From contig NIVC01000277.1 in assembly GCA_002269645.1 (NCBI GenBank), positions 62,001-126,000 on the forward strand: 64,000 bases of DNA, written 5' to 3'. Both the position numbers and the translations under genes were made by a program. The stretch's first letter is position 1. Every line of letters starts with the position of its first letter. The notes below the pieces were generated by a model. That model did not search any database, was not told where the DNA came from, and saw only the letters and a list, made by a program, of their open reading frames with translations. This document shows positions 1 through 60,123 of this stretch, piece after piece. This stretch comes from Macrostomum lignano. Its lineage: Eukaryota.

Positions 1-1572
1 TAGCTGCCGCACAACACCAGGCCAACCACAGTCGAGACGGGGATGAGAAGAGAAAGAGAACAAGCAGGACCAACATCAAGAAGAAGAAGAGACACCTTGC
101 AGAAATAATAAGAATGAGACTAAGAACTATTGAAAAGAATCCGGGACCGAGAGCACAGGAAGCACCTAAAAAACAAACAAAAACGAATAAAAACGAGCGC
201 AAACCAAAAAAAGACAAGTGAATGGAAGAAGAGGAGAAATGAAAGACGGAAAGAAAGAAGGACAAGAAGGAAGCAAAACGAGAAGAACCGCAGACAGAAG
301 AGACTGAAAGAGGAGACTCGAATCACAACATGGAACGTGCAGAGAGCTAACATCCTGGACAGACGCTTCGGAGAAATAACGAAGAAAATAATGACAGAGA
401 ACTGGCAAATCACTCTAATCTCAGAACTCAGAGCACCAGACGATGGAATAAGAAGCTACCACCAAAAAGGAAAGAATGTCCACCTGATTTACAGCAGGAA
501 AGCGGGAATTGTACTCAATGATGAATGGTACACCATCTGGAGAGACAGCGGAGCAAAGGTAACGAGGTGCGAGAGAGCGGTTATGCTTGAAATCTACGAG
601 TTATCAATCATCAGCATCTATAGTCCGGTCAGGGGCAGTCAACAATACGAAACAGAGCTGGCTGCACTCCGACATGAGATAGAACGGTACATCCATGCGG
701 ATAAGACACCAAGACCACTGATTATAGGAGGAGATTTCAATGCTCAGATTGGCAAAAACTCGGAAAGACCAACACCAAACAGAGGGAAATTTGGCTTGGA
801 GACAACAAATAAGCAGGGAGAAGACCTAGTGAACTGGTTGACATCCAACGACCTCGCATGGGTAAACTCGTTCTACCACCAAAAACGACGAGGGACATGG
901 CAGAACCCAAGTAACAGAAGATGGTACGAAATTGATGGATTCGCGACAAGAGCAGAGGACCGTAATAAAATCATAAAATCAATTAAAAATCACAACGGCT
1001 GTGCACTGTCCGACCACATCCCAAAGACATTAATAATCAGGAGCGTTGCCGACACAGGAAAAAGACCGAACGCAAAAAGACTGTACAGGAGAAGTAATCA
1101 AGGCATCAACTGGAAGAAGCTCTATGATGAAGAGAACGCAACGAAATTCAAAAAAGAGTTGGAAAGAAGAATGCAAACGTGGAAGGAGAACAAGGAGGAA
1201 AGAGAACAACCACCATGGACAGAAGTGCAAAGAATAATCGTGGAGAGTGCAAAGTCGATTTGCGGACCAGCGAACCGACAAACAAATCCGTGGATGTCAT
1301 CCCACGAAAACGACCTAAAGAGGTTGCACGAAGAATTGGCTGTAAGACTCCAACAGAGGAACAGGGCCAGGGAAACCCACGGCCCGAGAAGCGAGCAGAC
1401 GAAGAGAGCAGAAGAGGCGCTGAGAAAAACACGAAAAACCCAAAAAAACACGGTGCGTGAATGGGAAGAACAGTGGTGGGATCAACTGGCCGACGAATGT
1501 AGAAACGCAGCAGACAAAGGACAAATAGCGGTGGTATACGACAAACTCCGACTCCTAGACAAAAGAGGCACG
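1..1572 (+). mobile_element. RTE-like non-LTR retrotransposon, 5' part: basic N-terminal region plus APE endonuclease (ORF 130-1572; the element probably extends left of the window)
   Basis: The translation shows APE motifs ITTWNVQ, LISELR, SIYSP, IGGDFNAQIG, WYEID and SDH. The frame is cut at 1572 by an insertion and resumes in frame at 5274 (KRGT|AFNNSERGT). Confidence 0.92.
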
Positions 1573-4500
1573 CCCGCTGGAAAATGGTGCCTCAGCGCAA
1601 GCGTGATTTTGGCGTTTTTTAAGCAGAGAAGGCGAGTTTTGGGTGTGCAGAGCGTGCTTTGGGCTGGCTGAGTGTCAGTTAGGCGTAAAATTGGGGTGGT
1701 TGGTGGGGGGAGAGAAAAACGCCAAACCCGCTTAACCAGCTAATAAACGCCTGGGCAACTTAGGCAGCTAATTTTACGCGCAACCAGCTGGAAAGACGCC
1801 TAGGCAGCTAAGTTTACGGCCATGTAGGAAAGTACGCTTGGGCCGCCGAAATTACGCTCTGCCCGCCCAAATGACGCTTTGGCTGCTCTGACAGCCAATT
1901 TTACGCTCAACCTACTGAAGTGACGCTTAGACAGCTAAGCTTACGCCCAACCAGTTGGAATGACGCCTAGCCAGCTAAGTTTACGCCAACGGGATCATGC
2001 AAAGTACCGTCGCGCGCTGGTCGCCGCCGTCGCTGAATTCAACGGCCGCGCGGCCGCCGCGCGCGTGGCAGTGACATGAATAATTTCTCGACGTCATCCC
2101 GCCGCCCCGCACGGTCAGCAGTCGGCTGACGGCCAGCCGCAAGGATGCGGCTAATATCGCAGCCAGATACAAGGAGCTAGTAGGGGAGATCACGAGCGCG
2201 ATTGAAAATTTCATGGCTCCATATTCGGTGTCAATATTGTTACAGTATTAGCTTGCATGGTTGACTTTGCCAGGAAGCTGCACATTTACTAGCAACATGT
2301 TGCCGCTGTATTATCACTGCGGTAGATTATACCCTTTCTGACACCTTGCATTACGTTCTGAAACGCAACAATACAATTGAAAGTAATAATTAAAGTAGAC
2401 TTTTTGATGGAATACAGTAATTCTGTTGGCAAAAGACCGGAAGCAAATGTTTTATTTGGAATTTAACTGCCGTCGAAGGCCCACTTTAAAAGACCAATGA
2501 TGACTAATTATGAAATGTATTTCAATTGCGCAACTTGTTGAAAACATCTATTATAGGCATGAATGAACTGAGCGAGCACCCAACGTGTGTCTACAATTAA
2601 CGACAATTGCGTTATCTTGCTCGAGTGGAATAGGCACAGATTCAAATTGCATTGTATTTTTCGCTCAGATCATGCCCAAAGAAGAGTAGTGCTGCACTTC
2701 TGTGATCTGCACTTACATTTAACTGGCTGGCATAACAGGCCTCTGCCTAAACCAGAGCTCTCTAATACTAAAAGTATTTTAGTCAATACTTGGAATGACT
2801 GGACCAACTTTTGTGTTTAGTAGTCGTTTATTTGTTGCCTAATTGTTGTGGCTTTGTGCAATGTTAAAATAAGTATAGGAGATTAGTAAGAGTAATCTGT
2901 TAAATGTTTCTTCATCTTTCATTGTAGGCAGCTTTCTAGCTGTACACTTTTTTGGCTTGTACTTAATTAATTATATGACCTTTGTATCATTTGTGTGGCA
3001 AAATTCTTGATTTTTGCCTTTGGCATGTATATATAAATAAGAATTTGTTGCCAATTAAAGTATATGACTAGACCTATTTACAAGTCGCATCTGATAAGAT
3101 TTTTAGGCTGAGAAGGCCTAAGCTTGAGAGTTCATGTGTTTTGATTCATTATATTGATGTATTTAAACTGTCTTTAGACACATAATTTAGAGCTTTTTTT
3201 CTAGAAATCAATCAGTGTGAAATTGTGAAAATATGCATATATGATGTGATATGAATTTTGTATATAATATTTCATTTTTATTGGTTATTAATAGAAAGTC
3301 TACATTGCTTTTTTGTCATTTTAGGCACTATCAAGCTGAAAAAATGATTTCTTGCTAGCTACTATCATTCCTAGCTATCTTTTTTTAAAGATACAATCAT
3401 GTCAAAACAGCTGAAACAATTTCTTGCATCTCATTTTGAATATCATACGAAAAGGGAAAACAAGATCTTGAAATAAATAAGTGTAGATCTCAAGCTTTCA
3501 ATTCAAGATCTTAAGTCTAGGTTTCTTAATATGCCTAGGAGTAATTATTAATATGCATATTTAGGCGTAATAGGAAATTTTAATTAATATAATTTAATAT
3601 AAAGTCGTATAGTATAGTAATGATACCATACAAAAAATGGACTATTGCCTTTAATGTCTGTAATGTATAATGTGTAATGTGTTAATGTGTAATGTATTTT
3701 TACTTGCAATCACTTCCGTTATTCCGTGTATTTCATTACACTGTCAGGTTCCTGCCCTCACCGCCGTCGTCGTTCGGTCGGCACTAAGTGACTTCAAGCG
3801 GGACCCGGACGCTCACAATCGGAGCCGCCTGATCCGGAAGCTGCTGCAGGCCCTCTTCACCAAAGAGGAGCTGCAAATCAGCAGCTGGTCCGGCAAGACC
3901 CGCCGGCCCGGCGCTGCTAACAGCCCCGAGAAAATGATGCAGGCTCCGTCGGCTGCAAAGCTTGACGTCCTGGCGTCTTTCCTGTTGACGGAGGCCGGCA
4001 TTGCTGACTGCAACGACGAGGTCCGGGCCGTGTTTAAGAACATGGCCGACAACAGTCGGCGGGGCTCGCGCCCGAAGGCTGCTCGTCCTGCCCCTGGAGG
4101 TGGCGATACGCAAGCCGAAAAGCGCCCCCGCCATGCAGAGTCTGCTATCACACTGCAATCACGGCCGGCGAATGCGTCTAATCCTGAACCGGCGGCGAAT
4201 AGGGGATCTGCACCAGTGGTTAATGATGGCTCTGAACCGGCGGCGACTGCGTCTGCCTAAAAACGTATAATCTGTGTCAAAATAACATCACAAAAATGGT
4301 TACACGTTTTCGTCTTCATGCTGGTTTAAAAGCGCTCTTGCAAGCTAGCTTCAACTCATCCACTGTTTTTTCAGTTGCAAGTTACTAGTGATTCCCCACA
4401 AAATTTGTCCCGGCGAAAAGTTCATTATTGCTGCACCGGGATATCTGTTGAGTTTGACTCAACAGCGCCATGCTTTTATTGTTCTTTAGTACTTTGCATT

Positions 4501-5270
4501 GCATTACAAAAAAACAAAAAAATTACATTGTGGCTCTCATTACATTTCCAGCTCCACTGTTTTTGCTGCTCCAGCTCCACAGCATTTTATTATGTTCCAG
4601 TTCAAGATTTACGTTTACAACTTTCTTTGCTGTTTGTATTACTTTCTTGTTACAGCTACGACTTTTATGCAGCTTGTCTTTTTGCTCAGTCATTTGCCAG
4701 CGAATTAATGTTAATGTTAATGTTAAAAAATAATATTTAATTAAATACATACGTTCCTAGTTGTGTTATAAATTAAAAAACCAATTAAGGTAACTAGCTA
4801 AAAATTTTCAGCCATTATCTCTTACACTTTTGATTATTTTCTACGTACGGGACGCAGCTAGTACAGTGTATTCCCGAAGTACCGCGGCGTAAGCAATTAC
4901 CGGGCAAGGCGTATTTCAAGCGTAGCACTGGCGTATGCCAGGCTGGCAACATGCGTATCTCAAGCGTACCGCGGGCGTAAGCTTAGCGGGCAAGGCGTAT
5001 TTCAAGCGTACCGCGAGCGTTAACCCCACCCCAAACCCCAGCTGGTTGGGCGTGCGTGTGCGGTTTCTAGGCGTATTTTTGGCGGTTTCTGAAAATGTGC
5101 CTCAGTTTTACGCCTGTTTTACGCTTCTTTACGCACAACCTGCTATGTTTACGCCAAGTTTACGCGAAGCTCCCCCATCCTCCCCATAGCCGCGCACCCC
5201 CACCCACCCCTCCCCCGGAGTGTTTTTAAAGCGCATTTTAGGCGTATTTCGCGCTCCGTTTTCCAGCGGG
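1573..5270. mobile_element. Non-autonomous CMC/EnSpm(CACTA)-like DNA transposon, 3698 bp, inserted in the LINE
   Basis: It has a perfect 12-bp TIR (CCCGCTGGAAAA at 1573; TTTTCCAGCGGG ending at 5270) and a 3-bp TSD ACG (1570-1572, 5271-5273). Many TTACGC/GCGTAA subterminal motifs occur at both ends. Removing the element restores the LINE frame. No transposase ORF is visible. Confidence 0.85.
3748..4260 (+). CDS. BEN-domain-like coding exon inside the CMC-like element
   Basis: A splice acceptor (ctgtcAG, 3746-3747) precedes RLIRKLLQALFTKEELQISSWSGK...SAAKLDVLASFL...EVRAVFKNMADNSRR. This matches the BEN pattern LL..LF..EEL..S..G...LD...I....R. The upstream exon is uncertain (possibly about 2085-2225). 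Confidence 0.7.
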   Translation, partial: VPALTAVVVRSALSDFKRDPDAHNRSRLIRKLLQALFTKEELQISSWSGKTRRPGAANSPEKMMQAPSAAKLDVLASFLLTEAGIADCNDEVRAVFKNMADNSRRGSRPKAARPAPGGGDTQAEKRPRHAESAITLQSRPANASNPEPAANRGSAPVVNDGSEPAATASA

Positions 5271-5273
5271 ACG

Positions 5274-7550
5274 GCCTTCAACAATAGTGAAAGAGGCACG
5301 AATATCGACGAACAGGAATTCAAGGAACACCTAGAAAACATACAGAAAACAAGAATGGAGAACGAACCGGAGAAGATCGCAGAGCTCATTAGAAACATCA
5401 AAACCCCAGCGGGAAGTAAAACCATTAGCAAGGAAGAATACAGAGAACTCAGCGACACACCGAGTGACGCGGAGATCGAAAGAGCAATCAAAGAAATGAA
5501 GGACAAAAGCCCGGGAGAGGACGAAATACGCCTGCGCTACCTTAAGGAAGGGCCCGAAGAAGTTAGAGAAGCTGTCCGGGAAAGAATCCGATACCTATAC
5601 GAACACCGAGCGTGGCACTGGGAAGCCAGTGAGAAGGTAGGCCTTATCATACCACTCTTTAAGAAAGGGGACAGGACCGACCTTAACAATTACCGAGGAG
5701 TGTGCCTCCTGCCGATGCTAAGTCGCATATTGGCAAGAATCATCGCCTCAAGGTTACGGGACTGGGCAGAACGAGTCGGGGCGCTTGACGACAATCAGAA
5801 TGGCTTTAGAGCCAACCGATCAACGGCAGACAGCACCCAGATAATCATCCGTATACAAGAGGACATAATAGAATACCGCCAGGCGAAAAACGCCGTAGGA
5901 GACTGCAACCTAGAAGAAGACCAACTAGCATTTCTCCTGGACCTCCGGAAAGCATACCCCAGAGTCAGCAAGTGATTGACAAATTGAAGGACCTTCATGA
6001 ATACACAGAGTACAAAGTGAAAGGAAAGAAACAGTCCAGTGAATCGTGGTTGCCAGAAAGAGGACTACGCGAAGGATGCCCGACATCCCCAGTTCTATTT
6101 AATATCTTTCACCAAGCATGCATCAGGGAAGTTGAGGAGAAAAGAGCACAAACAGCAAAGGAGAAAAAGCAAATATGCGGAATCGAATGGACATACCTCC
6201 CAGGAAGCTCACTCCCACCTCAGCGAAGAAACCAACCAAACTCGGAGACCAAAACCGAACTCATCAGAACAACAGTTCTATTCGCAGACGACACCACTAT
6301 CCTAGGCAACCGCAAGGAACTCAGCGCGGGCCTAGAGTCGACGAAAGAAATAATGGCAGGATTCGAAGAACAAACGAACGACAAAAAAACAAGAGGAAAT
6401 TATATTCGGAACCAGAGAGGGAGGAAAAGTACGCATGCTAGGATCATGGACGGACACGAAGTATGACACGAGCCAGAGATTGCAAAAAGCGGCGAGAAGC
6501 TGGTCGACGATCCGTAGACGTTTTATCAAGTGCAGGTTGAAAAAGACCACGCAAGCGAAGGTCGTTGAAGCCTGTATTGAGAGCATCCTGCTATTCCACG
6601 CGAACATACGCCCATTCCTGAAGTCAGAAACGAAGCAACTACAAAGCTTCATGGACCGGATCTGGAACACTAAGGGAAATGGAGGCAAAAGGAATAAATA
6701 TGCAGGACATTCGCAATGAACTAGAAGTAACGACAATACAAACAAAGATTGAGAAGAGCCACCTGATCCGCATCGGACATGTGCTTCGCATGGAGGCGAA
6801 CCGCCTAACGAAAAAGATGGTTCTCGGATGGTACAAGGGTCTGGAAAAGATAAGGAAAACACGTAAGAGAAAAGGTAACACCATCGAATATTGGAAGCGA
6901 CTACTACGCCAAGCAGGGATCGAGCCCGAAAGGACAGAGAGACTAGCAACCGACCGCCAGAAATGGCGTAAAATTGTTCAAGAACGCATAAGCCACCTCA
7001 AGAGATGGGAACAACAACAAGGAAAGAAGGCAGAAGCAAGGAACATCGAAAGGAACGACAAACAGAAACAGGAGAAAACAAGAACACTCATATGTGAATA
7101 CACAGACTGCGGAAAGGAGTGCAAAAGCAAAGCAGGCCTGACCATTCACCAAAAGAGGATGCACCGCAAGATAGAAGAACCAGTAACGTTCAAGTGCGAA
7201 AAATGCGAGAAGCAGTTCAGGCAAGAGGCAACGTGGTTAAACCACGTAAAGGTCTGCGGAGGAGAGAGAGAAGTGGGACGAAACCGCGTAAAATGCGCGA
7301 ACTGTGCTCGAGAAATATCGAAATCAAACCTAGCGAGACACCGCAAAACCTGCGGTACAACGCGGGAAGAGACACGGTCCCCGGGAGGTGAGAGGAAGTA
7401 CCGAGCGAAAACTAAACAATGCGAAGGTTGTGGGCGCACGCTCGCCGCGACGAACATGGCACGCCACCTACGCACCTGCAAGGACTGCTGACGAGAGACC
7501 CCGAAGACTGCCCATGCCACACACGGCGACAAAAGGGAAGAAGAAGAAGA
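5274..7550 (+). mobile_element. RTE-like LINE, 3' part: reverse transcriptase plus C-terminal zinc-finger array, ending in a (GAA)n tail; disrupted by frameshifts and small deletions
   Basis: RT motifs are IIPLFKKGD...NYRGVCLL, QNGFR, DLRKAYPRV, GLREGCPTSPVLFN and LFADD. Frame breaks occur near 5973, 6390 and 6660. Four Cys/His motifs lie in 7090-7490, the stop is at 7491, and a GAAGAAGAAGAAGA tail ends at 7550. Confidence 0.92.
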
Positions 7551-9434
7551 CATTCCCATCGCGGAGCTGTTGCCAACCGCCTGACGTGAGCGGACCACGG
7601 CGCCCATTTGCAGAGCTCGGTGCGCATTATAACCGTAATTACGGTATATAACTGCAGCAGAGGTGCCGTGGGCGCGTGCAAATGCGTGCAGCTGCGCAGG
7701 CTCCATCGCCAGGACAACGCTGCTCAAGGTCCGACGCCAGTCTGTCGCCACATAATGTCTGCCGAGCAATCGCTCTCCTCCGGCGCTGATCATCCGGCTG
7801 AAGGCGCTCTCAGTGTAAACCCGGCCGAAGATGTCTAGAAACACCGTGGATACCTCGACCGCAGGAGCAGCGACTCCGCGCGCAGCCAGGCTTGGCCGGA
7901 TATAGCAGTCGTGCAGACGCAGCAGGGCGTCGCAAGACGTATCCGACAGCACCATGGTAGTCGGCTCGCCATTGTGCCCGGCCTTGTGCGGAACCTCTGT
8001 CAGCGGCATCACCAGGTGCGAGTGACCCTCCAGATCGGACTCCGTGGCGCTGATCGAGGTGTCCCGAAACAGCTGATCCATGTCGTCAGCTGCCCGGTGT
8101 CGCACTCTACGGTCCAGCAGATGCTGTCGCCGCAGATAGATCCACGGCAGGAGTCGCACTGGCTGTTCGACACTGCAGAAGAACAAGCACTCCTGCACGA
8201 TGCGGCGGACACAGGTCACCTTGGCGTTTAAGTTCTCATCGCCGGCGTCTGCGTGGTCGTCGTCGGCGGTGGCGGCTGCGGCGGTGCTCCAGTTGCCAGT
8301 CTCTGGCAGTCCCTGCCAGCTGTGCTCGAAGAGCATCTTAAAGAAGCGGTCGCGCCGGTCGAAGATGGCGCCGACCTCGCTCCGCTTAACGTAGCTGGCC
8401 ATGTAGGTCATCTGACGACCGTGATGGCCCAGCTTGTTCAGCTGTTCCTGCAGGGAGCGGATGGCGGCAAACTCGCCCTTGGCCTCGTTCAGCAATGAAA
8501 GCAAGCGTGAGACTGTTAGCTGCCTGGCAGCCAGCGAATCCTTACAGCAGTCGTCACCGCCGCCGTCATCATCTTTGCTGGCATTTTTTCCTCGCTCAAA
8601 ATTTCTGACTGGCGCAGCCCGATTGCGTCGAGCACCTGTTGGAAACAACGGTTGCCGCGCACATTCAGCCAGCCCTCCAAACACAGAAAAATCGACACCA
8701 TCTCTTGGCACTTGCGGCCGGCTGTTGAAGGTGCCAACTTTAACTCCTGGGCGACAACCTCAAGCCCGAAGACACTGGCGACGAGGTCGGGTCGCAGCAC
8801 TAAGTCGGCCAGAGTCAGCTGCTTTCGAAGCCAGAGCCGTTCCAGCGTGGCGCCAACAGAGCAGCAAATTTTCTGTCAGCGACAGCTGTGGCTCTGGTTG
8901 GCAGAGACGTGCAGTTTAACTGGTGCGGACCACCAGAGTGCTGTCAATCGACCAAGCATGGCATCGATGGACGGTCGGTCTGCTGCTACTCCAAGGGCCA
9001 CCTTTCTGGTGGGGTGCTCTTTCGGTGGTAAAGGTTCCAGCCTGAAATAGCGTCGGTGCTGTCCTGGTTGCAGCGTTTTTCCCTTTTTCCTTTGCTATCT
9101 CGCCTTCTTTCTGCGAGGAAGCAGCAGCAGCATAATCAGAGTGCCAACCTCAGGACTAGTCGGCTGCTGCAACTCGGGCGCCGCTATTTCCAGTGGTTCA
9201 GACGCAACCACGGCACTCAGGTCGGAAGCTCTGTCGTTCAACTGAATGCAATCAATAGTCGGCTGCTGCTGCGGCGACACAGTTATTAAAATGCTGCAGG
9301 CTGCTCGTCCTATTGAATCTGCAGCAACCATCAGACGATCGTAGATCGCCTAGTCGTCGTAATCTTCTGCTGATGCTCTTAACGCAGCAGACCCCATTGC
9401 CCCGTCGTCGCCATCCTCTGCTGATGCTCTTAAC

Positions 9435-11096
9435 CAAGGACTTCTCTATATAGCATCTGGACTGGAAGCTTCGCAATTTTTTTTCCGTCTCTACACCTCA
9501 CCGGGGCAAAAGAAGAAACGACCCAGAAGGAGGAAAGGATACAGGAAAAATTTAACTGTCAAGCTGGCTATAAACATGTCAAAGACACTGTACACAGAAA
9601 AGAAGCAAAGTTCAGAGGCATGCAGGGAAAAGCTCATGGGGTAAAGTTTTTTCCCCAACAATGAATCTTTAACATGTACGTTTATCTTGAAAACTAGTCT
9701 GCTATTCGGACTGAGTCATTACTGGAGGTGATGAGTGGGAGTCCCACTCCCAAGTTCTATATATACTGACGAGCTGGCTGTACTGTACAATAATGAAAAA
9801 GAAAATTTTGCCTTCAGTGCCTGCCTCATCAATTTCACAATACTGCTACAGTTGCTTCATGCACTGACAATTTTGTTCCAACAAAATGGTTAAGTCGTGC
9901 TCAGCACAGGGCTGCACTAATCGAGCCTCCTGGGACAAGGAACTGAGCTCTCATGGCTATCCAATGCACAATGCAGTCTTTATTGAACAATGGAAGCGAG
10001 CAAATCCAAGGCAGAATTTCGAGCCTACCAAGAGCTCAACCATTTGCTCTGCGCACTTCCACCCCCAAGACTTCGTGGAAAACTCTCTGGACACCAACGC
10101 GAGCCGCAAGAAGGGCCGGGACCAACTGTCGAGGCGGTATCTGAAGCCAGGGACGGTGCCGTCTATCTTCCCGAATCTCTCTTCTGCCAAGGCGGAACCG
10201 AGGTCAACTGCGGCAACATCAACTCAGCGCTTGGAGAGAGAAAATGCTGCATTGCAAGGCCAAATTGATGAGTTCCGAGATGCGGACTCAATCGTGGACG
10301 ACGACATTGATGAAGTGCAGCTAAAACTGAATCGAGAGGAAGGAAAACCGGCAGGATTTCATACCACCATGCTTGCTGACCAGCTGCATCTACACGCTGA
10401 ACATGGAGCCTTCATTTCATGTCTCCTGCTACATCTGCATGGCTAAGGACGACAGCATCACTATTGGAGTCAATGGAGTGTTGCTAAAGCCAACCCGACC
10501 CGACTCAGAGACTTACTTTCGGACGGGAAAGTATCGACTCTCAGTCGACTAGTCAACATAATGTCCAGAGTCAAGAACTGGGAGGTAGACAGTCCATCGG
10601 CCACTGGAAATTTGGAGCAGCTGAAACTCAGCAGGCAGCCGAGCTGCAGAAGGAGATATTCACAGCAGCTCATGATCTTCGCTTATGTTCTGTACCCCAC
10701 CAGCGCTTCGGCTTATAAGACAATACTGGAGCAGGACATCCTCTGTTTTCCATCTGATCGAACCCTTCGGTCTGCTTCAGCCAAATTTGCTTCAAAGAAT
10801 GGTCTAGACATCGAAAGCTACCTTCAGTTGAGAGCATCGAAGTTATCGAAATTTATCGAAATCGAATCGTAAATCGAAATTTTTAATAATCGAAATTATT
10901 AAAAAAAGAAATCTAAATCATTCAAAATAATTTTTTATTAGGCTCATGATTTATATAACAATATAAATGCATAATGGCCAGCTATCTAATATACGATGTA
11001 ACTAGGATCTAAGCTATTTTGGGAAGGGCTTTTGCCCCTCTAAGGTATATGCGGGTGGGGAGCTTCTAGTCCAGATGCTATATAGAGAAGTCTCTG
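9435..11096 (+). mobile_element. Internally deleted P-superfamily (THAP) DNA transposon, 1662 bp
   Basis: The TIR is CAAGGACTTCTCTATATAGCATCTGGACTGGAAGCT versus the right-end reverse complement CAGAGACTTCTCTATATAGCATCTGGACTAGAAGCT. The 7-bp TSD TCTTAAC is at 9428-9434 and 11097-11103. It carries a THAP ORF plus RYSQQLMIFAYVLY..SASAY...PSDRTL. The catalytic domain is absent. Confidence 0.9.
9886..10446 (+). pseudogene. THAP domain plus coiled coil of the P transposase N-terminus (186-aa ORF ended by a frameshift; remnants continue to about 10860)
   Basis: It shows the C2CH THAP signature CSAQGC...W...P....ICSAHF...F...LKPGTVPSIF. Confidence 0.88.
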
Positions 11097-12164
11097 TCTT
11101 AACGCAGCAGACCCCATTGCCCCGTCGTCGCCATCCTATGCTGATGCTCTTAACGCAGCAGACCCCATTGCTCCGTCGTCGCCATCCTCTGCTGATGCTC
11201 TTAACGCAGCAGACCCCATTGCCCCGTCGTCACCATCCTCTGCTGATGATGTCACCGCAGCAGACAGATGGTCGGTTGTCACTGGCCGATGGACAGATGA
11301 TGGGCATCGATGAGCTCGCAGTCGGCGGCGTGACTGTCCGCAGGCGGAAAAAACGCCTATCACTTCTAGACGATGACTGGCCTTGGTGCTGCGGCTGCAT
11401 TTGATTGCTAGCCAGATCATGTTTTGCCGCTGTTTGGTAGTTGCGGCCGCCCATTCGTTCTCTGTTGGCCGCATCCGCTCCGGCATATCACTTAGTGAAT
11501 AACTTTGAACGATATATTTCTCGTGCCGGTTTTTGTAGTGCCTCTGGATTTTTACCGGGCACGCACTCACAGCACGATGGGCAGACGGAGCTTCTTCTTC
11601 TAGAGGGCATCTTTCTATAATAATTATTACAAATCAAAGGATACGCAGTACAGTGTTGGAAAAAATGCCCGCTCTTAATCCAGCATATATATATATGTAG
11701 AGATATGTAGAGATATGTAGAGATAGGAGTTTCATATTCAAACCATCCTCCAATAACCCGCCTCCTCATATTTTATTGATGGCAAGCTTATTGGCTTTCA
11801 GTTCAGTCAATTAATCACTATTAAACGATTGACTTAATAACTATTGGTTAAATCAGCTGCGTGTCTGGGCTTGGCTGGCTGGCTGGCTGGCTTGTACTCT
11901 TTTGACTGAGTAATTTGATGCTTTTTACCATAGACTAAAGTTTACGGTCTCGCCCTCACTAGTGGAATTTTCCGTAGTTTCTTTTAACCATAGGCTGCTG
12001 CAGACCTGTCCGCTTGGGTTTATAAAACTCAGTCAGTCCCTTCCCTCCCTCAAACTGCAAGCATCATCGGCGCCCCAGCCTAGTCTACAGTTTCTACAGC
12101 TTTTCGAGTAAGTTACATTCATATCTGCTGCTCTGTGCATTATTCTATTACGAAAACAATCAGC

Positions 12165-13384: not shown

Positions 13385-15165
13385 TTCTTAGAATACAAAT
13401 GTAGAAGAGATTCTTAGAATGCACTGTAGAAGAGATTCTTAGAATACAAGGTAGAAGAGATTCTTAGAATTCACTGTAAAAGAGATTCTTAGAATACACT
13501 GTAGAAGAGATTCTTAGAATACACTTAAAAAGAGATTCTTCGAATACAAGGTAAAAAAGTTTCTTAGAATACAACGTAGAAGTTTCTTAGAATACTCTGT
13601 AGAAAATATTCTTAGGATACGAAGTAAAATATTTATGATGCAATCTTTATTACATTGAGAATTCTAGAGTTTTTCTCTAGCACTCTTACAATACAGTCAA
13701 TTTGAAAGAGCTGATTGAACCTTGCAAAAAGCATGTTTTCGAATACTTAATCCCCTTAGCATCGAGCCATTTCTTAGCGAAGACACAGGTACCGTCGCGG
13801 AAAAATTTCTTATGGAATGGTGCAAGTTTGAAGAAAATCGGTAAACCGTTTTTCCGAATTCTTAGAATACTGTGGCAGGGGGATGCCACGGTTTGATAAT
13901 AACATTAACTGAAATTTACGTAACATCCTCGGGATTTTTTTTCTGTCGTCATTCCTTCCCCCGGTGTGAGTTCTCCCTCTCCCGTCCCTGGCCCTGTTTG
14001 TCCCGTTGTTGTTTCTGCGTTTTCTCCCCATTTGTTCCAGTGTTTTTCTGTCTGGTCCATCCCCGGTGTCCCTTCCTTGTCCCCTTTTTCCTTCCGCTGC
14101 CCTTCTCAACGTACTATTTAAAATTTGTGTTCCGCGCGTTATTTTGCATGCTCTGCTTCCTCTGCTCTGCTCTACTATTACTTTGCCCTGCTCTCTTGCT
14201 CTCTTAGTTTTAACAGCCAGGTGTTTAATAGTTATTTTGCGTGAATAGTATAGTCGCCTAGTTACAGTTTTATTTTAGTAGCTTGTGCCTCCGGCACCCG
14301 TGGAAAACCTCGTCAATTAATCAGTTATTCAGCCTGCAAATTTAACGATAATAATAAACCGAAGCAAACCCCAACTTAATTATTTTTATTAATATTTCCG
14401 TTGACACTAAGCCATAGTCTCTCTTGAGTCATTGCCCGTGGGGCGTAAAATAACCAAGTTCTCATCTCAAGGAAAGCTCTGAGACTTATCCGTTCCGTAA
14501 TACGTAAATTACGGTGGTGGCAGCAACTACCCTATTGAAAACAACGAGCTCAGCAAACGACACAATTGTTTACGGTGTCAACAATCTCCGGTGTTTCATC
14601 GCTTTGAACGACCCGGGCCGCTACAAGACCGCTCGACTACGAATACGACTACCCTCCCCCCGGAATTGAGGAACCCGGCAGCCGGAGTAAAAGGAGAAGA
14701 ACTTCGTTGTGATTCGTCTGCGCGATTTTCCGGAATTAATTCGTGCGAACTCAACGCCGTTCGCTTTTTGAAGAAAACCCAGCATTTCAAACCCACCAAC
14801 TTCCAAACAAATTTTATTTTTCAAACTTCTCCACCCCCACCTCAATACAAAGTAGAAGATATTCTTAGAATACAAAGTAGATATTCTTAGAATACAAAGT
14901 GGAATATATTATTAGAATACAAAGTAGAAGATATTCTTAGAAAAAAAATAGAATACATTCTTACCATAAACAGTAGAAGAGATTCTTAGAATAGAAAGTA
15001 GAAGAGATTCTTAGAATAGATAGTAGAAGACATTCCTAGATTACAAAGTAGAAGAGATTCTTAGAATGCAAAGTAGAAGAGATTCTTAGAATGCAAAGTA
15101 GAAGAGATTCTTAAAATGTAAAGTAGAAGAGATTCTTAAAATAGAAAGTAGAAGACACTCCTAGA
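13385..15165. repeat. Two arrays of a 25-bp satellite (AAAGTAGAAGAGATTCTTAGAATAC) at about 13385-13630 and about 14845-15165, flanking a Helitron-like fragment and a GC-richer unclassified insert
   Basis: Direct reading of the repeated units. Segment 13690-13870 resembles 17130-17320. Confidence 0.85.
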
Positions 15166-15856
15166 AGTGAAGGGAAGGGAAGGGAGAATTACATGTAGAT
15201 GCTTGCTATTAGGGTACCAAAACTGCAATCAAGTTATCAGTCCATCTATATCTTAAATAGCCCATATCCGAAACTTTACGCTCCAAATTTGACTTACGCA
15301 CCCAATTTAACGGTACATTCATATTCACGCCAATGCCAATGCAGCAGGAATTTTAGCATGTAGGGCCAGGGTAGCAATTCTTTTTCCATGCTAAAATTTA
15401 CTTGTGATGGCTTTTCAACACGTGCTCCAATAACTCACTGATTTCTTGAACGGCCAGAGAAATCATCGCATGACATTCTGCTTGTTTCATCCGCCTGCGT
15501 ACTCGATTCGCGTTGACTCGAGTTGGCTCTCACCAGACGGCACCAGTCTGTATAGCTTCTGTAGAAAGGTAAAGTTAATGTGAACAAAAATTTACAGGTC
15601 TGCATAAAACAATTGTACATTCCTGACCGAGTAATACACAATGAACTGTACTCAGAGATGACAAAATAAGAGGTGACAAAATACATTTGCGACGATAGAA
15701 TGGGTCACAAATAATAGAACAGATCAGAGATCACAAAAATAGATGATTACTAGCAATCTTCGCCCCCCGATGGGGGACATATGGATAGAATCTTTGTTCT
15801 TTACAAGTAACAAATAGACAGCGCAAAAAAAGCTTTCATAAAAAAAACAATAGACA

Positions 15857-16780
15857 TCTAAATATACTAAATCTCTAAGGTTTGTTTGTATGTTTGTCCA
15901 TCTATATACTAAAAATTCTCTCTAAAAACAAAACATCCCAAGACAGCAAACATCCTCAGACAGCATCGATCCCCAAATAGCAAGCATCCCCCAGACTGCA
16001 AGCATCCCCGAGATAGCAAGCATCCCCCAGATGGCAAGCATCCCCCAGATAGCAAGCAAACCCCAGATAGCAAGCAACCCCAGATAGCAAGCAACCCCAG
16101 ATAGCAAGCTTCCCCCAGATAGCAAGCATCCCCCAGATAGCAAACATAACCTGGATAAAAAGAGACCTTATAGATATCTAGCAACCCCCTCTCAGATAGC
16201 AAGTACCCTCCACCCCCCAAGAGCAAGCATCTGCCAATAGCAGGTAACCCCAGTAGCAAGCATCCCTCAGATAGCGAGTATCCCTCAGAAAGCAAGCATC
16301 CCCCTGATAGCAAGTATCCATCCTTAAATAGCAAGCATCCACCAGAGAACAAGTAGCTAGTGCAACAATTTCCTTAGCTTTATAGTGGCTCCATTTTGTT
16401 TGGCATGACACTTCTTTTTATGTTTGAAACGGTGGCTTTTTATGTTTGAAATGGTGGCTCTTCTATTTTTGACATGGTAGCTCTTTAATGTTGACATCTT
16501 GGCTCTTCTGTTTGACATGGTAGCTCTTTTATGTTTGACATAGTGGCTCCCTTTTGTGTGAAATGGTGTCTCTTTTGTGTTTAAGGTTTGACATGAAGTC
16601 ACGTATATGTTTGACATGGTGGCTCTTTATTGTTTTACATGGCGGCTGTTTAATGTTTTACACGGTGGTTCTTTAGTGTTAGACATGGAGTCACGTATAT
16701 GTCTGACATGGTGGCTCTTTAATGTTCGACATGGTGGCTCTTTTATTTTTGACATTGCGCTCCTTTTATGTTTAGCAGTT
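15857..16780 (+). repeat. Helitron-type 5' ends (15857, 15901) followed by an 18-bp minisatellite (about 15930-16350) and a roughly 23-bp minisatellite (about 16400-16780)
   Basis: A|TCTAAATATACTAAATCTCTAAGGTTTG and A|TCTATATACTAAAA are followed by the units CATCCCCCAGATAGCAAG and ATGTTTGACATGGTGGCTCTTTT. Confidence 0.75.
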
Positions 16781-18225: not shown

Positions 18226-21200
18226 ATTCGCCCAAGAGCATTTAATCTTAGAAATTCCTTAATGAATCATTTATGATTGACACGACGATGGCTCTATAAT
18301 TGAACTCAAACCCTAACCCTTAACCTGCAGCCGAGTCACAGTATTTCAGCAACTCCTTCTCAGCCCAAGAATTTCAAAAATTCCCCAATGAGCTTTTGAA
18401 ATCTTAGCAATTTCCCCATGAGCATGAAAATTAAGCGACTAACCTTTTGATATCTTGGCACTTTTACATGAGTCTTATGGTTGAAAACTAACTCTGCCAA
18501 GTCACAGCATTTTAGCAATTCCCACTGTAAGCCACAACATTTCAACAAATACCCAATGAACCTTGACATTTCGTGAATTTCAGCTATTCGCTTTAGGAGC
18601 CTTTGAAATCTCAGCCATTCCCCTGTGAACCTTAGCATCTCAGCAATACACAAGAGTCACAGCCTAAAGCATTACACGGATCCCCCGTGAGCTTTGAATT
18701 CTCAGCTATTCCCCAATGAGCCTTGATATCTCAGCAACTCCTATTTGAGCCACAAAATTTCGGCAATATGAGTAGGTGCTGTAATCACAACAATCCCCCT
18801 GAGCATTGAGCCACATTATAATTTGGATATCCCCCCATGAGCCTTGACAACTTAGCAATTTCCCAATGAGTATTTAATGTTAGACAGGCCTATTAATTTA
18901 TATGGTTTACGTCTTACTCTTACCCTAACAATGTCGGCAATTCCCCCAAGAGCAACAGCATTCTAGAAATTATCTCCATGAGCCTTGACAGCAAATAATT
19001 TTAATGAGCCTTGATACCTCAGCAATTTCTCAAATGAACTTTGAAATCAAAGCAATTCTGCCCAGAATCACATCAGTATAGGAATTTCCCTCTGAGCCTT
19101 GACAAGACATCTCCGAATTTCTCCCATGGGCCTTGATCTGGCCCAGGGCCCAGTAAGCCTTGAAATCTCAATAATTCCTCAGTAAGCCTTGACATCTCAG
19201 AAATTCCCTCATTAAGATCGAAATCGCAGCAATCGAACTCAAGCTTTAAAATCAAAGCAATTCTCCCCAGAATTACATCATTATAGCAATTACCGCTGAG
19301 CCTTGAGATCTTAGAAATTCTTCCATGAGTCTTGATATCACAGAAATTTTCCATACCAGCCCTGACATCTTAGAAATTCACATTGAGTATTTTATTCTCG
19401 ACAGACCGCTTCTTTTATGGTTGACATGGTGATTCTTTTGTCGCTTTTTCTTGTGTTGAGTTTTCTTATGTTTAAAGTAGCATTTATTAAAATCTTACTT
19501 TTCAATTATTTACTCAGAAAAACAAAGAAAAACAGGTAAACACTTTAGCAATGGTTTACCATCACTTTAGCAATGGTTTACCATCACTTTAGCAATGGTT
19601 TACCATCACTTTAGCAATGGTTTACCAGCAGTTTAGCAATGGTTCACCAGCAGTTTAGCAATGGTTCACCAGCAGTTTAGCAATGGTTCACCAGCAGTTT
19701 AGCAATGGTTCACCGGCAGTTTAGCAATGGTTCACCAGCAGTTTAGCAATGGTTCACCGACACTGTTCCGCAAAATCTGCATAGGATACAATCATTATTG
19801 TCACAGGTCACAAAGATAAATTCGCTGCTTCAATGCAGGCTCTAACTGCTGACATCAAAGCATTCTGCTTAGCTTCTGCCGGATACTGCCTGCCTACTGC
19901 GGCTGTTTTGCCTATAGACATGTGGTCGAAATAATCTAGTTTAGCAACTTCAGCCGTTTGAAGTTAACCCCCAGAAATAGGCATTTATCCCTACAACAAC
20001 CTGAAATTATCCCTGCATCTAATCCCGCAAAAAGACTGCAGTTATTTCTTAGCAGCCGGCATTTATCATCCACTTTGCATTCTACAACTTTTACTAAAAT
20101 TAAGCATGTATACCCTCGGCTCATAGAATTGTCCTCTTAGCAAAAAATATTTCACTTAGCAACCCGCAGTAATCCCCTCAACAATTTGTACTTGATCTTT
20201 CACAGTTAATATCCACTCAAAACTCAAAACTCAGTTTTTTGTTACCCTCAGAAGTCTGCCATTATCCCCCTATTAGTCGGCAGTTTTCCCTCTCAGCAGT
20301 CTGCAGCTATACGCTCATACGTCTGGAGGAACTACCTCAGCAGTTTGCAGTTGTTTCCCCTTTGCAATCTGCAATGATCCCTTCGACAGTCTGCAGTTCC
20401 CCTCAGCAGTCTGCAGTCATTCCATTTGCAGTCTAAAACTGTTCAATTAACAGTTTTCATTAATCCTCTCAGCAGCCTGCAGTTCTCCTCTCAGTCGCCA
20501 CCTCAGCTCCTCAGAAAACTGCAATTTGCTAAGCATTTTACGGCTCACTAATAAAGTTTCGATACATATCGGCAGTCTTGCAAAACTCAGCATTTAGCAA
20601 TAACTTCAGCAGTTTTTTCAGAATGGTCTGCAGTTTAGCAATTTCATAATTTCATGGAACTATGCCATATACCCATTGATGGGATCAGTACGCTCGTAAA
20701 ACATGTACTCGAAGCAGTTTTTACAAATCAAAATTTCTTAGCGACTTGTGCCAAATAGCAAAAATAGTTCATTAAGTGTGCCTTGTTAATTGAGCATAAT
20801 AGTTCCAATTAGTCGAAGCACAAGCTAAAATGAAATAATTAGTTCAATTTTAATTGTCCGCTGCTAGGCAGACTCTGAACCTGGGACCTTACGCCTATCC
20901 TAAACCTTGTCCTGGTGCCTACAGTGCGGCTACTCCGCCTATTGATCGGAGGGCGACAAAATCAGCCATACATGCTTTGGCACTGCAGTCAAATACACAG
21001 CAGTGATAGGCTGCTTAGTGCACGGGTTGCATGCAGGCAGAGTCAAGTAAGCCTTGACATCTCAGCATTTCCCCAGTAAGCCTTAACATCTTAGCATTCC
21101 CCAGTAAGCCTAATCTTAGCAATTCCCCAGTAAGCCTAATCTTAGCAATTCCCCCAGTAAGCTCTGAGATCTCAGCAATTCCCTCAGTAAGCCTTGACAT

Positions 21201-33619: not shown

Positions 33620-35115
33620 CCATGCATGCAGCCCTGGCTGTGGGGTGTAGCACGCCGTTCATCCTGCTCTACAACATGAAAGTTCTTCTTTGAAAGTTTA
33701 GAGCAGAGCATCCGTTCATGACCATCAGTCTCGCCACATTTTACCGACATAGACCAGCATATGTTGTTCATCCAAAGCTGTCAGACCGGCATCAGTGCCT
33801 GTGTCCAAAGTGCGAGAACCTTGACCTATTAGTTGAGGGTCTCTACTCGTTAGGGCTTGTCAGAGCTAACGACAAGCACGCTCTGCTCCTAGAAGTTATT
33901 TGCTCAGAAGAATCAGCCGCCTGTCTCCGCCACCAGTGCCTAAAATGCCGCTACAAATCTCCAGTCGTCATGGAAGTCGCTGCTGGTCTGCCGGGGGTCA
34001 CCTACTGCAAGTGGGAACCAAAAGAGGATTCAAGCGGCATGGAGATTGTGCACCTGAAAGTCAAGTGCGAGGTGGCCATCTGTGAGCTTCATAAACTGCT
34101 TCGAGATTACAGCACCCACTTTATGCGGTTGCGGCACCAGTAACGAGCCATTCGTGAGCTGAGATCCAGTCTTGGGCCGCACCATTTGGCCCTCCACATT
34201 GACTTCAGTGAAGCGTATGGTGCAAAGTATTTCAGGGAAACCCAGTCAGCGCATTTCGGAGACCGCGGTCAGGTAACGATACATCAGGGCGTCGCCTACG
34301 TGGAAGACAATGCACCGCAGTCGTTTGCCTCCCTGTCGGACGACAAAAGCAAAAAGGCTGAAGCCATCGCTGCGCATCTAGAGCCAGTGTTGGATCACTT
34401 CCAGACTCTCCTTCACAACTCTATTGAGCGAGTTTCCATCATTTCGGACTCGCCAAGTAGCCAATATCGCAATCGGAGGACGCTCTATATCATCGACCGT
34501 CTATTACGCCTGAGAAACATCTTTCGGTGGCAGTGGCTGTACACGGAATCTGGACACGGCAAAGGTGCAGCTGACGGCGTCGGTGCTGCCATCAAGCGGC
34601 GCTGCGATCGGCTAGTGTCCACCGGCGAAATCAGGCAGATTGTGACGGCAGAGGATGTGCAGATGGCCATGGAGACTCCACAAAGATTGGACATCATCCC
34701 GTTTCGAGTAACGACTGAAGCAATCGCCAAGTACTCCAATGTGCTGAATATGGTGCGGCTACAGACGATGCCGGGCATCGCTAGCGCACACCATGTCTGC
34801 CGGTTGAGCACAGGTGTGCTGTATCGCGAATTGGCATGCTCCTGCAAGGAAGCTGCTGCAAACTACTTGTGCCACGAAGCGAAGTCTTGGCTAATTTTTG
34901 ATGCACCAACGCGTACTGAGAGTCGGCAATTAACTATGTGTGAAGCGACACTGGCTGATGATAAAGGCCAATGCCGGAGGATTGCTACTGCTGGCAAGGG
35001 CCGATGTCAGGGTCGAGGTCACAGACATAATGGTGCAACAAGCCAGCGCTCCGGCAACCTTCGCGGCCAGATAGGCTTTCAGTGCAACCCAACCGTCGTC
35101 ATTTCTTTTCAATAG
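33620..35115 (+). pseudogene. Sola2-like DDE transposase pseudogene (5'-truncated; in-frame stops at 33691 and 34141)
   Basis: Motifs are ISLATFYRHRP, CLCPKCEN, HIDFSEAY, QVTIH, ISDSPSSQYRN and ESGHGKGAADGVGAAIKR, as recalled for Sola2 transposases. Confidence 0.75.
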
Positions 35116-35318
35116 TACTCGTAAGTTACAGTTACCATTATTTCTCTTTTATGAACCGGTTTTTATTGCTTTAGTATCAAGGACGACTAAAGTAACTAGT
35201 AAAGTAAAGTAGTCCTTGTTTAGTATTTTCTTGATGTTGCCTCTGTTACTGAATTCAAGCTGACCAAATCGCAATGCCTCCCCAACTATGGTCGCGGGCA
35301 CTGATTGTTAGTAATTAC

Positions 35319-38300
35319 TGTTGTGTATTGCAAAGGCATGCGATGCGTAGGGGTAGTTCGGGGACAGCGTTTCTAGAAACTTCCACCGCGGACTTGTTTA
35401 CGCATAGTTCCAGAAGTTTCCTTCCCCGGTCTTTCTAGAACTTTCCTTCCCCGCGTGCATAAATATACGAGCCGCCCTCCTATTGGCCAAGCCCTCTTTT
35501 GGTGCCACTGAGCGCCCGGATAATTATCTATCTTGTTGCTGCGTTCGTTAATTCAACAACAGAACATTGGCGACGAGGATGGCGGCTAGCATCCCCGCAC
35601 CCACGCCCTTCCTGGCGAACTGCGGATCACCGACAGTACCATGGAGCCGATGGATTGAGGCCTTTGAATTTTATTACGAGGCGGCCCAATTCAAGGAGCC
35701 CAAAGGGAAGGAAGAGGCGAAACCGCTGAAGAGGAGCCTTCTGCTCCATCTGCTTGGATTCGAAGGTCAGCGGGTTGCTCGAGCACGCCAAGCAATCAAG
35801 GAGAACGACACGTTCGCAGCAACTAAGGCGGAGCTCGAGAAGATCTTCGGCGAGAAGCCCAACGTGATGGTAGCCAGATATCGCTTCCGCCAGCGCCAGC
35901 AGCTACCCGGCGAGGACGTCAAGACCTTCGTGGCAGCCCTGAGGGAGCTGACGGAGCTGTGCAACTACGGCGCAATACAGGACGATCTCATCAGAGACCA
36001 GCTGGCTGAGAAGACCAGTAACCCCAGAATCCGAGAGAGGCTGCTGACGGAGAAGGTGGAGGACCTCAACCTGGCGAAAGCACTCAGCATCGCGGTCTCC
36101 ATCGAGGAAGCCTCCAAAGAAGCCAAGGCGATGGCGCCATCAACCTCGAGCACGGCAGCCGTCCAATCGATCCGACAGCCGAGGGGCCAGAAGGTCGCTG
36201 CAAAGGGGAGGCACCGCCCAGCACCAGCTGGCAGGACGGCCAAACCCGGCGGCGCCTGCACGCGCTGTGGGCGAGACCACGGACCGACGACCCACTGTCC
36301 GGCCAAGGGCAAGACATGCGAGGCCTGTGGCAAGAAGAACCACTTCCGGAGTTGCTGTCGCAGCCAGCAGGCTGCTGTCAATGCCGCGGACGAGGTGATC
36401 ACAGTCTACGCAGTGCCGGGTGGCGACAGGGAGGTCCGGGCGACGCTGGAACTCGGACCGGACAGGACCGCTGTCAGCCTGATGGTGGACTGCGGCGCAA
36501 GGGTGTCGCTGCTGTCCCGACAGACCGCCGATCGGATCTCAGGTGCAGTCACCTCTCCCACTACGACGAAGCTGCGTGCCTACGGCGGACTGCCAATCCA
36601 GCTAAGTGGTGTCACCGAGCTGGAGGTGCGCTACGGCGACAAGGCGATGCAGCACCGGTTCTTCGTTGCGCCAGGCGGCGACAACATCGTCGGTAGAGAC
36701 CTGATGGAGAAGCTGGGCTTCCGAGTCGACCTTAGCGGGCAGCCGCCCGGAATCGCGGAGGTCAGCGACTTGACGGCGGACTTGCAGGCGCGGTACCCAA
36801 CGACCTTCAGCGGTGCGATAGGATGCTGCGCCGGCGCTGTACACCAGCCCAGGGTCGACCCAGCAGTGCGACCCGTCCAGCAGCCACTCCACCGCCTGCC
36901 CCTCATGCGACAGGAGCAGGTCGGTGCCGAACTCGACAAGATGGAGAAGGACGGCATCATCGAGCGAGTCAACGCTAGCGAGTGGGTCTCCAATCTAGTG
37001 GTGACGGCGAAGAAGGATGGCAGCATCCGAATCTGCGTCGACGTTCGCGAGCCGAACAAGGCACTGATCGTCGACAAGCACCCGATGCCACAGCTGGACG
37101 AGATTGCCTCGAAGATCAAGAAAGGCCGCGGCCGAGTGTTCAGCAAGATTGATCTGAAGTCGGGCTACATGCAGATGCAGCTGCATGAATCGAGCCGCAA
37201 TCTGACAGCCTTCATCACGCACAAGGGGCTCTTCCGCTATCGTCGAGTTCCCTTCGGCCTGGCATCGACACCAGCTGCTTTCCAGCGCATGCTCGACGAT
37301 CAGGCCGCCGACCTCGGAGTGGAGCACATCCTGGATGACTTCATCGTGTACGGGCGCAGCGAGGAGGAGCATGATCGACGACTGGAGAAGTTGCTCCAGC
37401 GCCTCGAGGACAAGGGCATGACGGTGAACAAGCAGAAGTGCGCCTTCAAGCAGAAAGAGGTCGAATTTTTCGGATTCGTGATCTCCGAGGCCGGCATCCG
37501 GCCAACGGAGTCAGCCACAGCGGCCATCAGGGACATCCGGCAGCCCGGAGATCAGAAGGCGTTGAAGTCATTTCTAGGCGCTGCTAACTTCCTGATGCGC
37601 TTCGTGCCGCACTACGCCGACATCACAGAGCCGCTTCGAAGGCTCCTGAAGGCCGACTCCAACTTCGACTGGACGCCGGAGTGCCAACGGGCGTTCGAAG
37701 CAGTGAAGGACGCCATCAGCAAGGCACCGACGCTCGCCCACTTCGACCCGAAGGCCGACACTATTGTGACCACGGATGCCAGCGCCAAGGCCATCGGAGC
37801 CCAGCTGTCGCAGATCCAGGACGGCGTCGAGCGACCGGTCGCCTTCGCCGCCCGAGCGCTGACGACGACGGAACAGCGCTACGCCGCGAACGAGCGCGAG
37901 GCACTGGCTAGCTTCTGGGCGATGGAGAAGTGGCATTTCTACCTCTACGGTCGCCACTTCGAGCTGCGCACAGATCATCAGGCGCTGCAGCAGCTACTTC
38001 TCGGACCGACCGGCACGGGACACCGGCCACTGCGGATCCATAGGTGGTGCGACCGGCTGCTGCAGTACGACTTCCATGTGCGCTACCTGCCAGGAAACAG
38101 CAACTACATGGCCGATCTGCTGTCCCGGTGGAGCAGCGGATCGGAGCTGAACCTGATCCACCTGCCCGACACTCCAGGCCCGAGAGTCAAGGCGGTCACA
38201 CTGGAAGCACTTACCGCAGGGACCTCGGCTGACGAGACACTGGGGACAGCCATCAGGAGCGTCATCAGCGGCCGGAGGCCAGCTGACATCGACGACGTTG

Positions 38301-58900: not shown

Positions 58901-60123
58901 TCAAGGCTTTCGGTGAAATTCTGATTACAAAGCTTATTTATGAGGAAGTTACTTTAATGCTGAGGCTCAAGGCTTATGGTGGAAATTGCCAACACGCCAA
59001 GACTCACTTATGGGTTAGGGTGACCATTAATTAAAGACTTGTTTAGATATAATCAAAGTTCATTGTGGAATCGCTCTGTTGACAAAGCTCATAAAGAAAT
59101 TGCTGAGTTATCAAGGCTTATAAGGGTATTGCTGAATTCTTGGGAAAAGGGAGTTGGGTTGTTGGTATGTCAAGGCTTACTGCGCTGGGAGAATTGCGTG
59201 ATGTCAAGGCTCGAGTTTAATTGCTGTGATGTCGAGGCTTAATGGGATAACTGCTGAGATGTCAAGGCTTACTGGGGGAATTGCTGAGATGTCAAGGCTT
59301 ACCGGGGGGCAATTGCTGAGATCTCAGAGCTTATGGGGGGAATTTCTGAGATCTCAAGGCTTACTAAGGGAATTGCTGATATGTCAAGGCTTACTGGGGA
59401 AATGCTGAGATGTCAAGTCTTACTGAGAATTGCTAAGATTTCAATGCTTACTGGGGGAAAGCTGAGATTTCAAGGCTTACTGGAGCAATTGCTGAGATCT
59501 CAAGGCTTACTGGGGGAATTGCTGATATGCCAAGGCTTACTGGGGAATTGCTGAGATGTTAAGGCTTACAGGGGAATTGCTGATATGTAAAGGCTCATGG
59601 ACGATGGCTGAATTTTGGGGGGGGGGGGTTACTAGGTTATTGGGCGATTGTCAGATAGTCAGGTAGTACGGCTCAAGTAGCTCATGTAATTCAGATAATG
59701 AAAAAAACACAGAAGTGATGCTGATTTCTGCTAATAGGAAATACCAGCGCATTTATTAAATGTTTGATTCTTTGATTTAGGCTAATAAACAGAGAGGGTC
59801 TAAGGCCGTCAGGGATTTGCATTTTGAGCTCCTGCTGCGGATCAGAATATGCCCCGGCCAGTGACGATATTCACTAAGAGTTTGTGCTTGAACGGATAAG
59901 CACTATTTGCTGATTGAGAAAGGGTTTTGGGCTGATGAAGGAAACTTTTTGGCTAATGAAAGTTCTGATTCATGGCAACTTATTTTTTCAAACGTGAGAA
60001 AAGGTAATTTTTGATTAATGAAAATAAACATTTTGGATAATTATAGTAAGGTTGCTGTTGTGCCAAAATAAAAACCAATTGGTGTCATTTTCAAGGCTCC
60101 CCAGAGGGGGGCTAAATGGCTAG
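55937..60123 (+). mobile_element. Composite non-autonomous Helitron-like element, copy C (longest copy)
   Basis: Its 5' part shares sequence with the 357-bp Helitron. The 3' end is a GC hairpin followed by TAAATGGCTAG|T. It contains a 22-bp array (57705-58320, about 28 copies) and a 30-bp array (about 59230-59600). Confidence 0.75.

Follow-up and report, generated by a model that had tools for sequence, protein, structure and literature searches.

Locus and reading frame

The DNA analysed is a stretch of 64,000 nucleotides from Macrostomum lignano (contig NIVC01000277.1, positions 62,001 to 126,000), hereafter the window. Near its left end, the minus strand carries the remnant of a gene resembling those of tyrosine recombinases. 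A LINE on the opposite strand adjoins and truncates it, the two being convergent and placed tail to tail (Table 1). The surrounding LINE, Ty3/Gypsy, piggyBac and THAP/P-element sequences are compatible with an animal genome, as had been supposed in an earlier reading made from the letters of the window only (the sequence-only reading).

Table 1 Coordinates of the recombinase-like gene and of neighbouring features in the window
Feature	Positions	Strand	Basis or remark
Tyrosine-recombinase-like ORF	8711 to 7146	minus	521 codons, ORF listing
Broken coding remnant of the tyrosine-recombinase-like gene	7554-8980	minus	tblastn of family members, translation, composition
Family-conserved helical N-terminal region	8211-8534	minus	alignments; model helices at pLDDT 83-93
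Predicted catalytic (integrase-fold) domain	7575-8210	minus	alignment, AlphaFold secondary structure, Foldseek
Codon of the candidate nucleophile Tyr359	7635-7637	minus	invariant in 6/6 relatives covering the position
Spurious 3' extension of the ORF, antisense LINE read-through	7146-7553	minus	family homology ends near 7575
LINE 3' half (RT domain, ORF2 C-terminal region, four C2H2/C2HC fingers, (GAA)n tail)	5220-7553	plus	Pfam RVT_1, zf-C2H2; sequence
LINE RT domain	5220-6466	plus	Pfam
LINE ORF2 tail with four zinc fingers	6679-7491	plus	Pfam
APE-type LINE endonuclease ORF	130-1671		
51-nt tandem array, 5' of the recombinase-like gene	9345-9434 and 11097-11265		
P-element-like non-autonomous insertion, 1.66 kb, splitting the 51-nt array	9435-11096		
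THAP/P-element fragment	9886-10872		Pfam
Ty3/Gypsy retrotransposon	34186-39546	plus	pol at 35567-39100
piggyBac transposase region	46268-48097		DDE_Tnp_1_7

Residues of the recombinase-like protein are numbered from position 8711, the start of the listed reading frame. We rejected this frame as a single protein: its last ~135 codons are antisense to the zinc-finger tail and the (GAA)n end of the LINE, and therefore lie outside the recombinase-like gene. The predicted catalytic domain carries, in the order known from phage integrases, Arg186 in a QPVR motif (codon 8154-8156), Lys243 in a PHK motif (codon 7983-7985), Arg326 in a TDWRR motif (codon 7734-7736; Arg327 follows) and Tyr359 in an NYG motif. 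Both positions that canonically hold a histidine are occupied by threonine in the window copy: Thr323 of the TDWRR motif at the His-II position, and Thr350 of a GTS motif at the His/Trp-III position. Both the order of the four residues and the two replacements agree with what had first been read from the sequence. Upstream of this domain, the helical region contains a coiled-coil-like helix and an HSW..LP..G.W motif; it is a possible core-binding-type domain.

The window copy is a dead pseudogene remnant, inert in a transposon graveyard. According to tblastn with family members, its coding homology reaches about 8980, upstream of 8711 and in a frame other than that of the ORF, which makes the remnant about 1.43 kb long. 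The damage consists of one frameshift and one in-frame stop. A start codon is not evident, and at the LINE junction the copy has lost both its stop codon and the C-terminal tail, which is poorly conserved. With these defects the copy cannot work. Its G+C content is 60%, versus 39% in the satellite-rich flank. No second copy was found within the window by tblastn, blastn or the family HMM. Searches of the window likewise found neither the missing 3' tail nor a target duplication of the LINE, and nothing in it matched the N-terminal ~500 residues of the long M. lignano protein described below. Scanned in full for Rfam families and tRNA genes, the window gave no match.

A small protein family

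An exhaustive HMMER scan of 1.84 billion representative proteins retrieved eight relatives, with E-values from 1.5e-13 to 7.5e-5 and 27-36% identity. Neither the single protein nor two alignments brought up anything new in word-indexed protein searches. The relatives come from UniRef entries of M. lignano itself, from four short contigs of one JGI metagenome (3300040801), from one Logan SRA contig (SRR31628394) and from one ENA metagenome contig (ERZ28573525); the metagenome and SRA contigs are eukaryote-like. In UniRef, the M. lignano relatives are mislabelled "Ras-GEF domain-containing". They amount to about seven near-identical entries, and their cluster includes a protein of 1084 residues with N-terminal C2H2-like fingers.

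Across the relatives, the proposed catalytic positions are constant or nearly so. Arg-I is kept in 6/7 (the remaining one has Cys), the lysine in 6/6, the Arg-Arg pair of Arg-II in 7/7, the Thr-Ser pair at the His-III position in 6/6 and the tyrosine in 6/6. The His-II position is variable, being Thr, Met, Tyr or Ser. The 220-residue domain alignment contains eight invariant columns, and five of them are R159/R160, T183, S184 and Y192. With eight homologues at hand and the proposed catalytic residues among so few invariant columns, the motif pattern is more than chance. Lack of conservation of these residues among relatives had been named beforehand as one possible ground for refuting the assignment, and they proved invariant or nearly so.

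These matches show that the gene is real and comes from a small unannotated protein family. So far, the family has been seen only in M. lignano and in a few eukaryote-like metagenome and SRA contigs. A search of the published papers brought up no description of the family.

Sequence comparison with known recombinases

Neither the window protein nor its relatives matched any entry of Pfam, NCBIfam or PHROGs at E-values up to 1-10. In particular, no family member matched the Pfam families Phage_integrase, DUF3504 or DUF3435. Searches of PDB sequences with the single protein and with two profiles returned nothing relevant, and neither did hhalign of the family against XerD alone.

The family was also compared by hhalign with group profiles for DIRS, for Crypton F/I/A/S and for the bacterial recombinases, which we built from the alignment published with PMC3212892 (Additional file 4). 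The best value, P 0.015 with the bacterial set, is not significant. The register of this alignment is nonetheless the expected one, with Thr aligned to His-II, Arg to Arg-II, Thr to His-III and Tyr to Tyr. The known groups detect one another by the same procedure at P 1e-3 to 1e-18. No sequence method ties the family to recombinases.

The sequence-only reading would have been abandoned had the protein nested inside a described Crypton group. No nesting in any described Crypton or DIRS group was found: all P values against these groups are at least 0.15, and DUF3504 and DUF3435 are absent. Against the Cryptons, hhalign gave P 0.21 (F), 0.46 (I), 0.94 (A) and 0.58 (S); among themselves, the Crypton groups reach P 8e-4 to 8e-12. 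All four groups (F, S, A and I; Kojima and Jurka 2011, PMC3212892) keep an R-H-R-Y tetrad, which the family does not share. It does resemble Cryptons in being eukaryotic, in having a recombinase as apparently the sole enzyme with no RT, and in its few, often decayed copies. The DNA-binding region added in some Cryptons may have a parallel in the C2H2-like fingers of the long M. lignano protein.

Elements of the DIRS/Ngaro/PAT type, the commonest recombinase-bearing elements of animals (PMC3212892), had to be considered, the more so as an RT lies 1 kb away. The window gene could then be a fragment of such a retrotransposon that lost its RT part. The DIRS profile, made of 15 sequences, argues otherwise: it detects every other known group at P 1e-9 to 1e-18 but reaches only P 0.15 with the family (this comparison covered DIRS and PAT). 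DIRS-like elements (DIRS, Ngaro, PAT) share with the family the presence of recombinases in animal genomes. The family differs from them by its lack of catalytic histidines and of RT/RNase H: none accompanies the window gene on its strand, and none occurs in the relatives, the 1084-residue M. lignano protein included. We consider this origin most improbable. The nearby RT, the only one beside the gene, was rejected as a DIRS component: it is part of an APE-type LINE that lies on the other strand and converges on the gene. The claim that neither a DIRS-like RT/RNase H nor a capsid gene adjoins the recombinase-like gene is borne out.

By these profile comparisons, the family lies outside CryptonF, S, A and I, the DIRS-like elements, the DUF3504 proteins and the DUF3435 Captains. 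From the Starship 'Captain' recombinases it is set apart by the missing DUF3435 domain (no Pfam match).

Predicted fold

The positive evidence comes from structure prediction, which had been proposed for the translation of the window gene. A single-sequence AlphaFold model was useless (pLDDT 38). The model computed from an alignment of nine sequences reached a pLDDT of 67.9 and a pTM of 0.67. In it, Arg186 begins a short helix that follows a long one, Lys243 sits in the loop of a β-hairpin, Arg326 begins a helix, Thr350 lies in a loop and Tyr359 belongs to the last helix. The modelled positions of all five residues match those of integrases.

Compared by Foldseek with 350,542 PDB chains, the model found tyrosine recombinases in 21 of its 22 best matches: XerA (E 0.023), XerH, XerD, Tn1549 Int, Cre/Tre, IntI and lambda Int are among them. 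The match to the MRSA integrase 3nkh has a probability of 0.99 and a TM-score of 0.51. Of the named BFVD matches in ranks 1-39, nearly every one is an integrase or a recombinase; the best E-value is 0.0068. The TM-scores are about 0.25-0.5. As none of the matches, in PDB or BFVD, passes an E-value of 1e-3, the result is an enrichment in rank and not one strong match, and confidence in the integrase fold is modest for the same reason. On the strength of the model, we nevertheless hold it quite likely that the protein family has this fold.

The spacing of the motifs is close to canonical. From Arg-II to the third position and from there to the tyrosine there are 24 and 9 residues in the window protein. 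Lambda Int has 22 and 9 at these places, and both XerD and Cre have 23 and 9 (reference sequences fetched by accession). The distance from Arg-I to Arg-II is longer, 140 residues versus 99-119 in known recombinases, owing to a longer insert between box I and the hairpin.

It may be objected that the protein is no recombinase at all: an unrelated helical family whose R/K/R/Y pattern is a coincidence, seen through an unreliable AlphaFold model. All sequence-profile tests failed, the Foldseek E-values all exceed 1e-3, and an alignment of nine sequences is shallow. Against this objection, two independent structure libraries place recombinases nearly throughout their top ranks. Moreover, the catalytic positions, canonically spaced, are where the invariant columns fall, and the model puts the lysine on the β-hairpin loop and the tyrosine in the last helix. 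We hold the objection to be rather improbable.

The family probably belongs to the tyrosine recombinase superfamily, even though it shows no sequence-profile similarity to it and lacks the canonical histidines. It resembles XerA, XerD, XerH, Cre, lambda Int and Tn1549 Int in the predicted two-domain fold and in the common order of Arg, Lys (on the β-hairpin), Arg and Tyr. It differs from these recombinases by its eukaryotic host, by the change of His-II to Thr, Met, Tyr or Ser and by the invariant Thr in place of His/Trp-III. The first description of the protein as very divergent but tyrosine recombinase-like is upheld by the motif order, by the conservation among relatives and by the predicted fold.

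Probable nature of the unit

No other enzyme is encoded on the same strand beside the recombinase-like gene, either in the window or in six related loci (L001-L006; the related loci are 0.6-2.4 kb long), and Pfam shows no further catalytic domain in the M. lignano protein of 1084 residues. Damage is frequent among the relatives, with a single frameshift in L001, a single in-frame stop in L003 and an internal deletion in L004. Exact stretches of 27-36 nt are common to L004 (1064-1151) and L005 (1-607), both from the same JGI sample, and their arrangement suggests that L004 arose from an L005-like copy by internal deletion. Several lineages of the family, with only 37-58% mutual identity, occur together in one metagenome sample. 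The flanks of the related loci have no shared termini, and neither element ends nor target duplications nor an empty site came to light. Copy decay, diverged paralogues, the G+C content and the lack of an RT would fit a low-copy, decaying Crypton-like element with the recombinase as its sole enzyme.

The sequence-only reading had found the motifs more virus-like than Crypton-like. This is not supported. Locus scans of IMG/VR, metagenome contigs and prokaryote genomes found no related loci, and tblastn against 50,697 phage genomes had no match. Viral hallmark genes (capsid, packaging ATPase, polymerase) are absent near the gene, in the window and in the six loci alike. The BFVD matches do include proteins of Tetraselmis virus 1, Feldmannia virus FirrV-1-B4 and Pyramimonas orientalis virus, as well as Qinghai Lake virophage, nudivirus Vlf-1 and hytrosavirus proteins, and the remnant forms a G+C-rich island. 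Both observations could be expected if the remnant went back to an integrated DNA virus, or Polinton-like virus, that had the recombinase as its integrase. However, the recombinases of algal giant viruses, virophages and nudiviruses score no better than phage integrases. The resemblance to recombinases of eukaryotic DNA viruses (nudivirus/baculovirus Vlf-1, phaeovirus, algal giant virus, virophage) is a weak structural match at the level of phage integrases; sequence relation, viral gene context and relatives on viral contigs are all wanting. A viral origin appears very unlikely.

A further candidate is a host gene: the window copy would be a pseudogene of a domesticated family, anciently derived from a recombinase in the manner of DUF3504 genes, whose products bind DNA or protein and do not recombine. 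The DUF3504 proteins (KCTD1, ZMYM2-4, QRICH1, WOC) are indeed comparable, being of animals, recombinase-derived, degenerate in their active site and fused to zinc fingers. Likewise, both canonical histidines are lost here, the M. lignano form is long and contains zinc fingers and other regions, and the family is very rare in databases. The hidden polyploidy of M. lignano (PMC10468722) could explain its several copies, which need not mean transposition, and this weakens the copy-number argument for an element. Four observations speak against domestication. DUF3504 genes have lost the tyrosine and the second arginine (PMC3212892), whereas the family, which has no Pfam DUF3504 match, has lost the histidines only and keeps R, K, R and Y invariant or nearly so (Arg-I in 6/7). 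Several of its copies are independently broken or deleted. Diverged paralogues occur in one sample, and the window copy, with its foreign-looking G+C content, sits in a nest of transposable elements. We regard a host gene as unlikely.

On balance, we favour with some reserve the reading of 7554-8980 as the remnant of a very divergent tyrosine recombinase-like family, probably of a Crypton-like DNA element, whose catalysis and mobility we infer.

Proposed mechanism and implications

Cre, Xer and lambda Int act as multimers on DNA, through a 3'-phosphotyrosyl intermediate, and exchange strands with no need for external energy. An intact member of the family is predicted to combine a helical region at its N terminus with a catalytic domain of integrase fold. 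By analogy, it would bind to DNA in multimeric form. Arg186 and Arg326 would hold the scissile phosphate, and Lys243, on its β-hairpin loop, would protonate the leaving group. Attack by Tyr359 would then create a 3'-phosphotyrosyl link and lead to conservative strand exchange, again with no external energy. Since the second canonical histidine is replaced by an invariant Thr-Ser pair, catalysis, if retained, would use a non-canonical pocket. The replacement of both histidines may imply a modified proton transfer, or else a reduced or lost catalysis. The most likely role of the protein would be that of the sole enzyme of a Crypton-like element, responsible for its excision and integration by site-specific recombination.

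The mobile lineages of eukaryotes that rely on tyrosine recombinases are few: DIRS-like elements, Cryptons, the fungal Starships and some DNA viruses. More tentatively, the family may represent the recombinase of an unrecognised superfamily of animal elements, apart from Crypton, DIRS-like elements and Starships, with an invariant threonine for His/Trp and, in at least some members, N-terminal zinc fingers that could direct the choice of target; at present this is a doubtful proposal. If true, a further animal family unseen by profile libraries would broaden the known range of eukaryotic recombinase elements. Its active site, with Arg-Lys-Arg-Tyr kept and both histidines exchanged, would also be a natural test of how far an integrase active site is replaceable. 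For annotation, the gain would be a model for sequences now called "hypothetical" or mislabelled. The consequence for the window itself is small, its copy being inert.

Neighbouring elements

A distance of 3.5 kb, with tandem repeats and a weak BEN-like ORF (3670-4260) in it, separates the LINE endonuclease ORF (130-1671) from the RT that begins at 5220. The gap at 1671-5220 is either an insertion into one LINE or the space between two separate LINE fragments. By tblastn, one zinc finger of the LINE bears a faint, non-significant resemblance (E 3) to the finger at the N terminus of the long M. lignano protein.

On the other side of the recombinase-like gene, the P-element-like insertion has imperfect terminal inverted repeats, with TCTTAAC at both sides. 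It contains a THAP ORF (9886-10446) and a weak P-transposase HTH (10561-10872). Satellite arrays with periods of 25, 18, 23 and 22 nt follow at 13385-16773 and 19544-19758; they lie in a stretch of 39% G+C whose GC skew is strongly negative. Towards the right end, positions 58000-62000 show a strong positive GC skew of up to 0.34, and overlapping ORFs with no Pfam match occupy both strands at 60802-61790.

The pol ORF of the Ty3/Gypsy element is uninterrupted (1177 residues: protease, RT, RNase H and integrase) and lies in a block of 60-63% G+C. The piggyBac ORF, at 46271-47992 on the minus strand, is apparently intact, with 574 residues from its ATG and a DDE_Tnp_1_7 match at E 5e-60.
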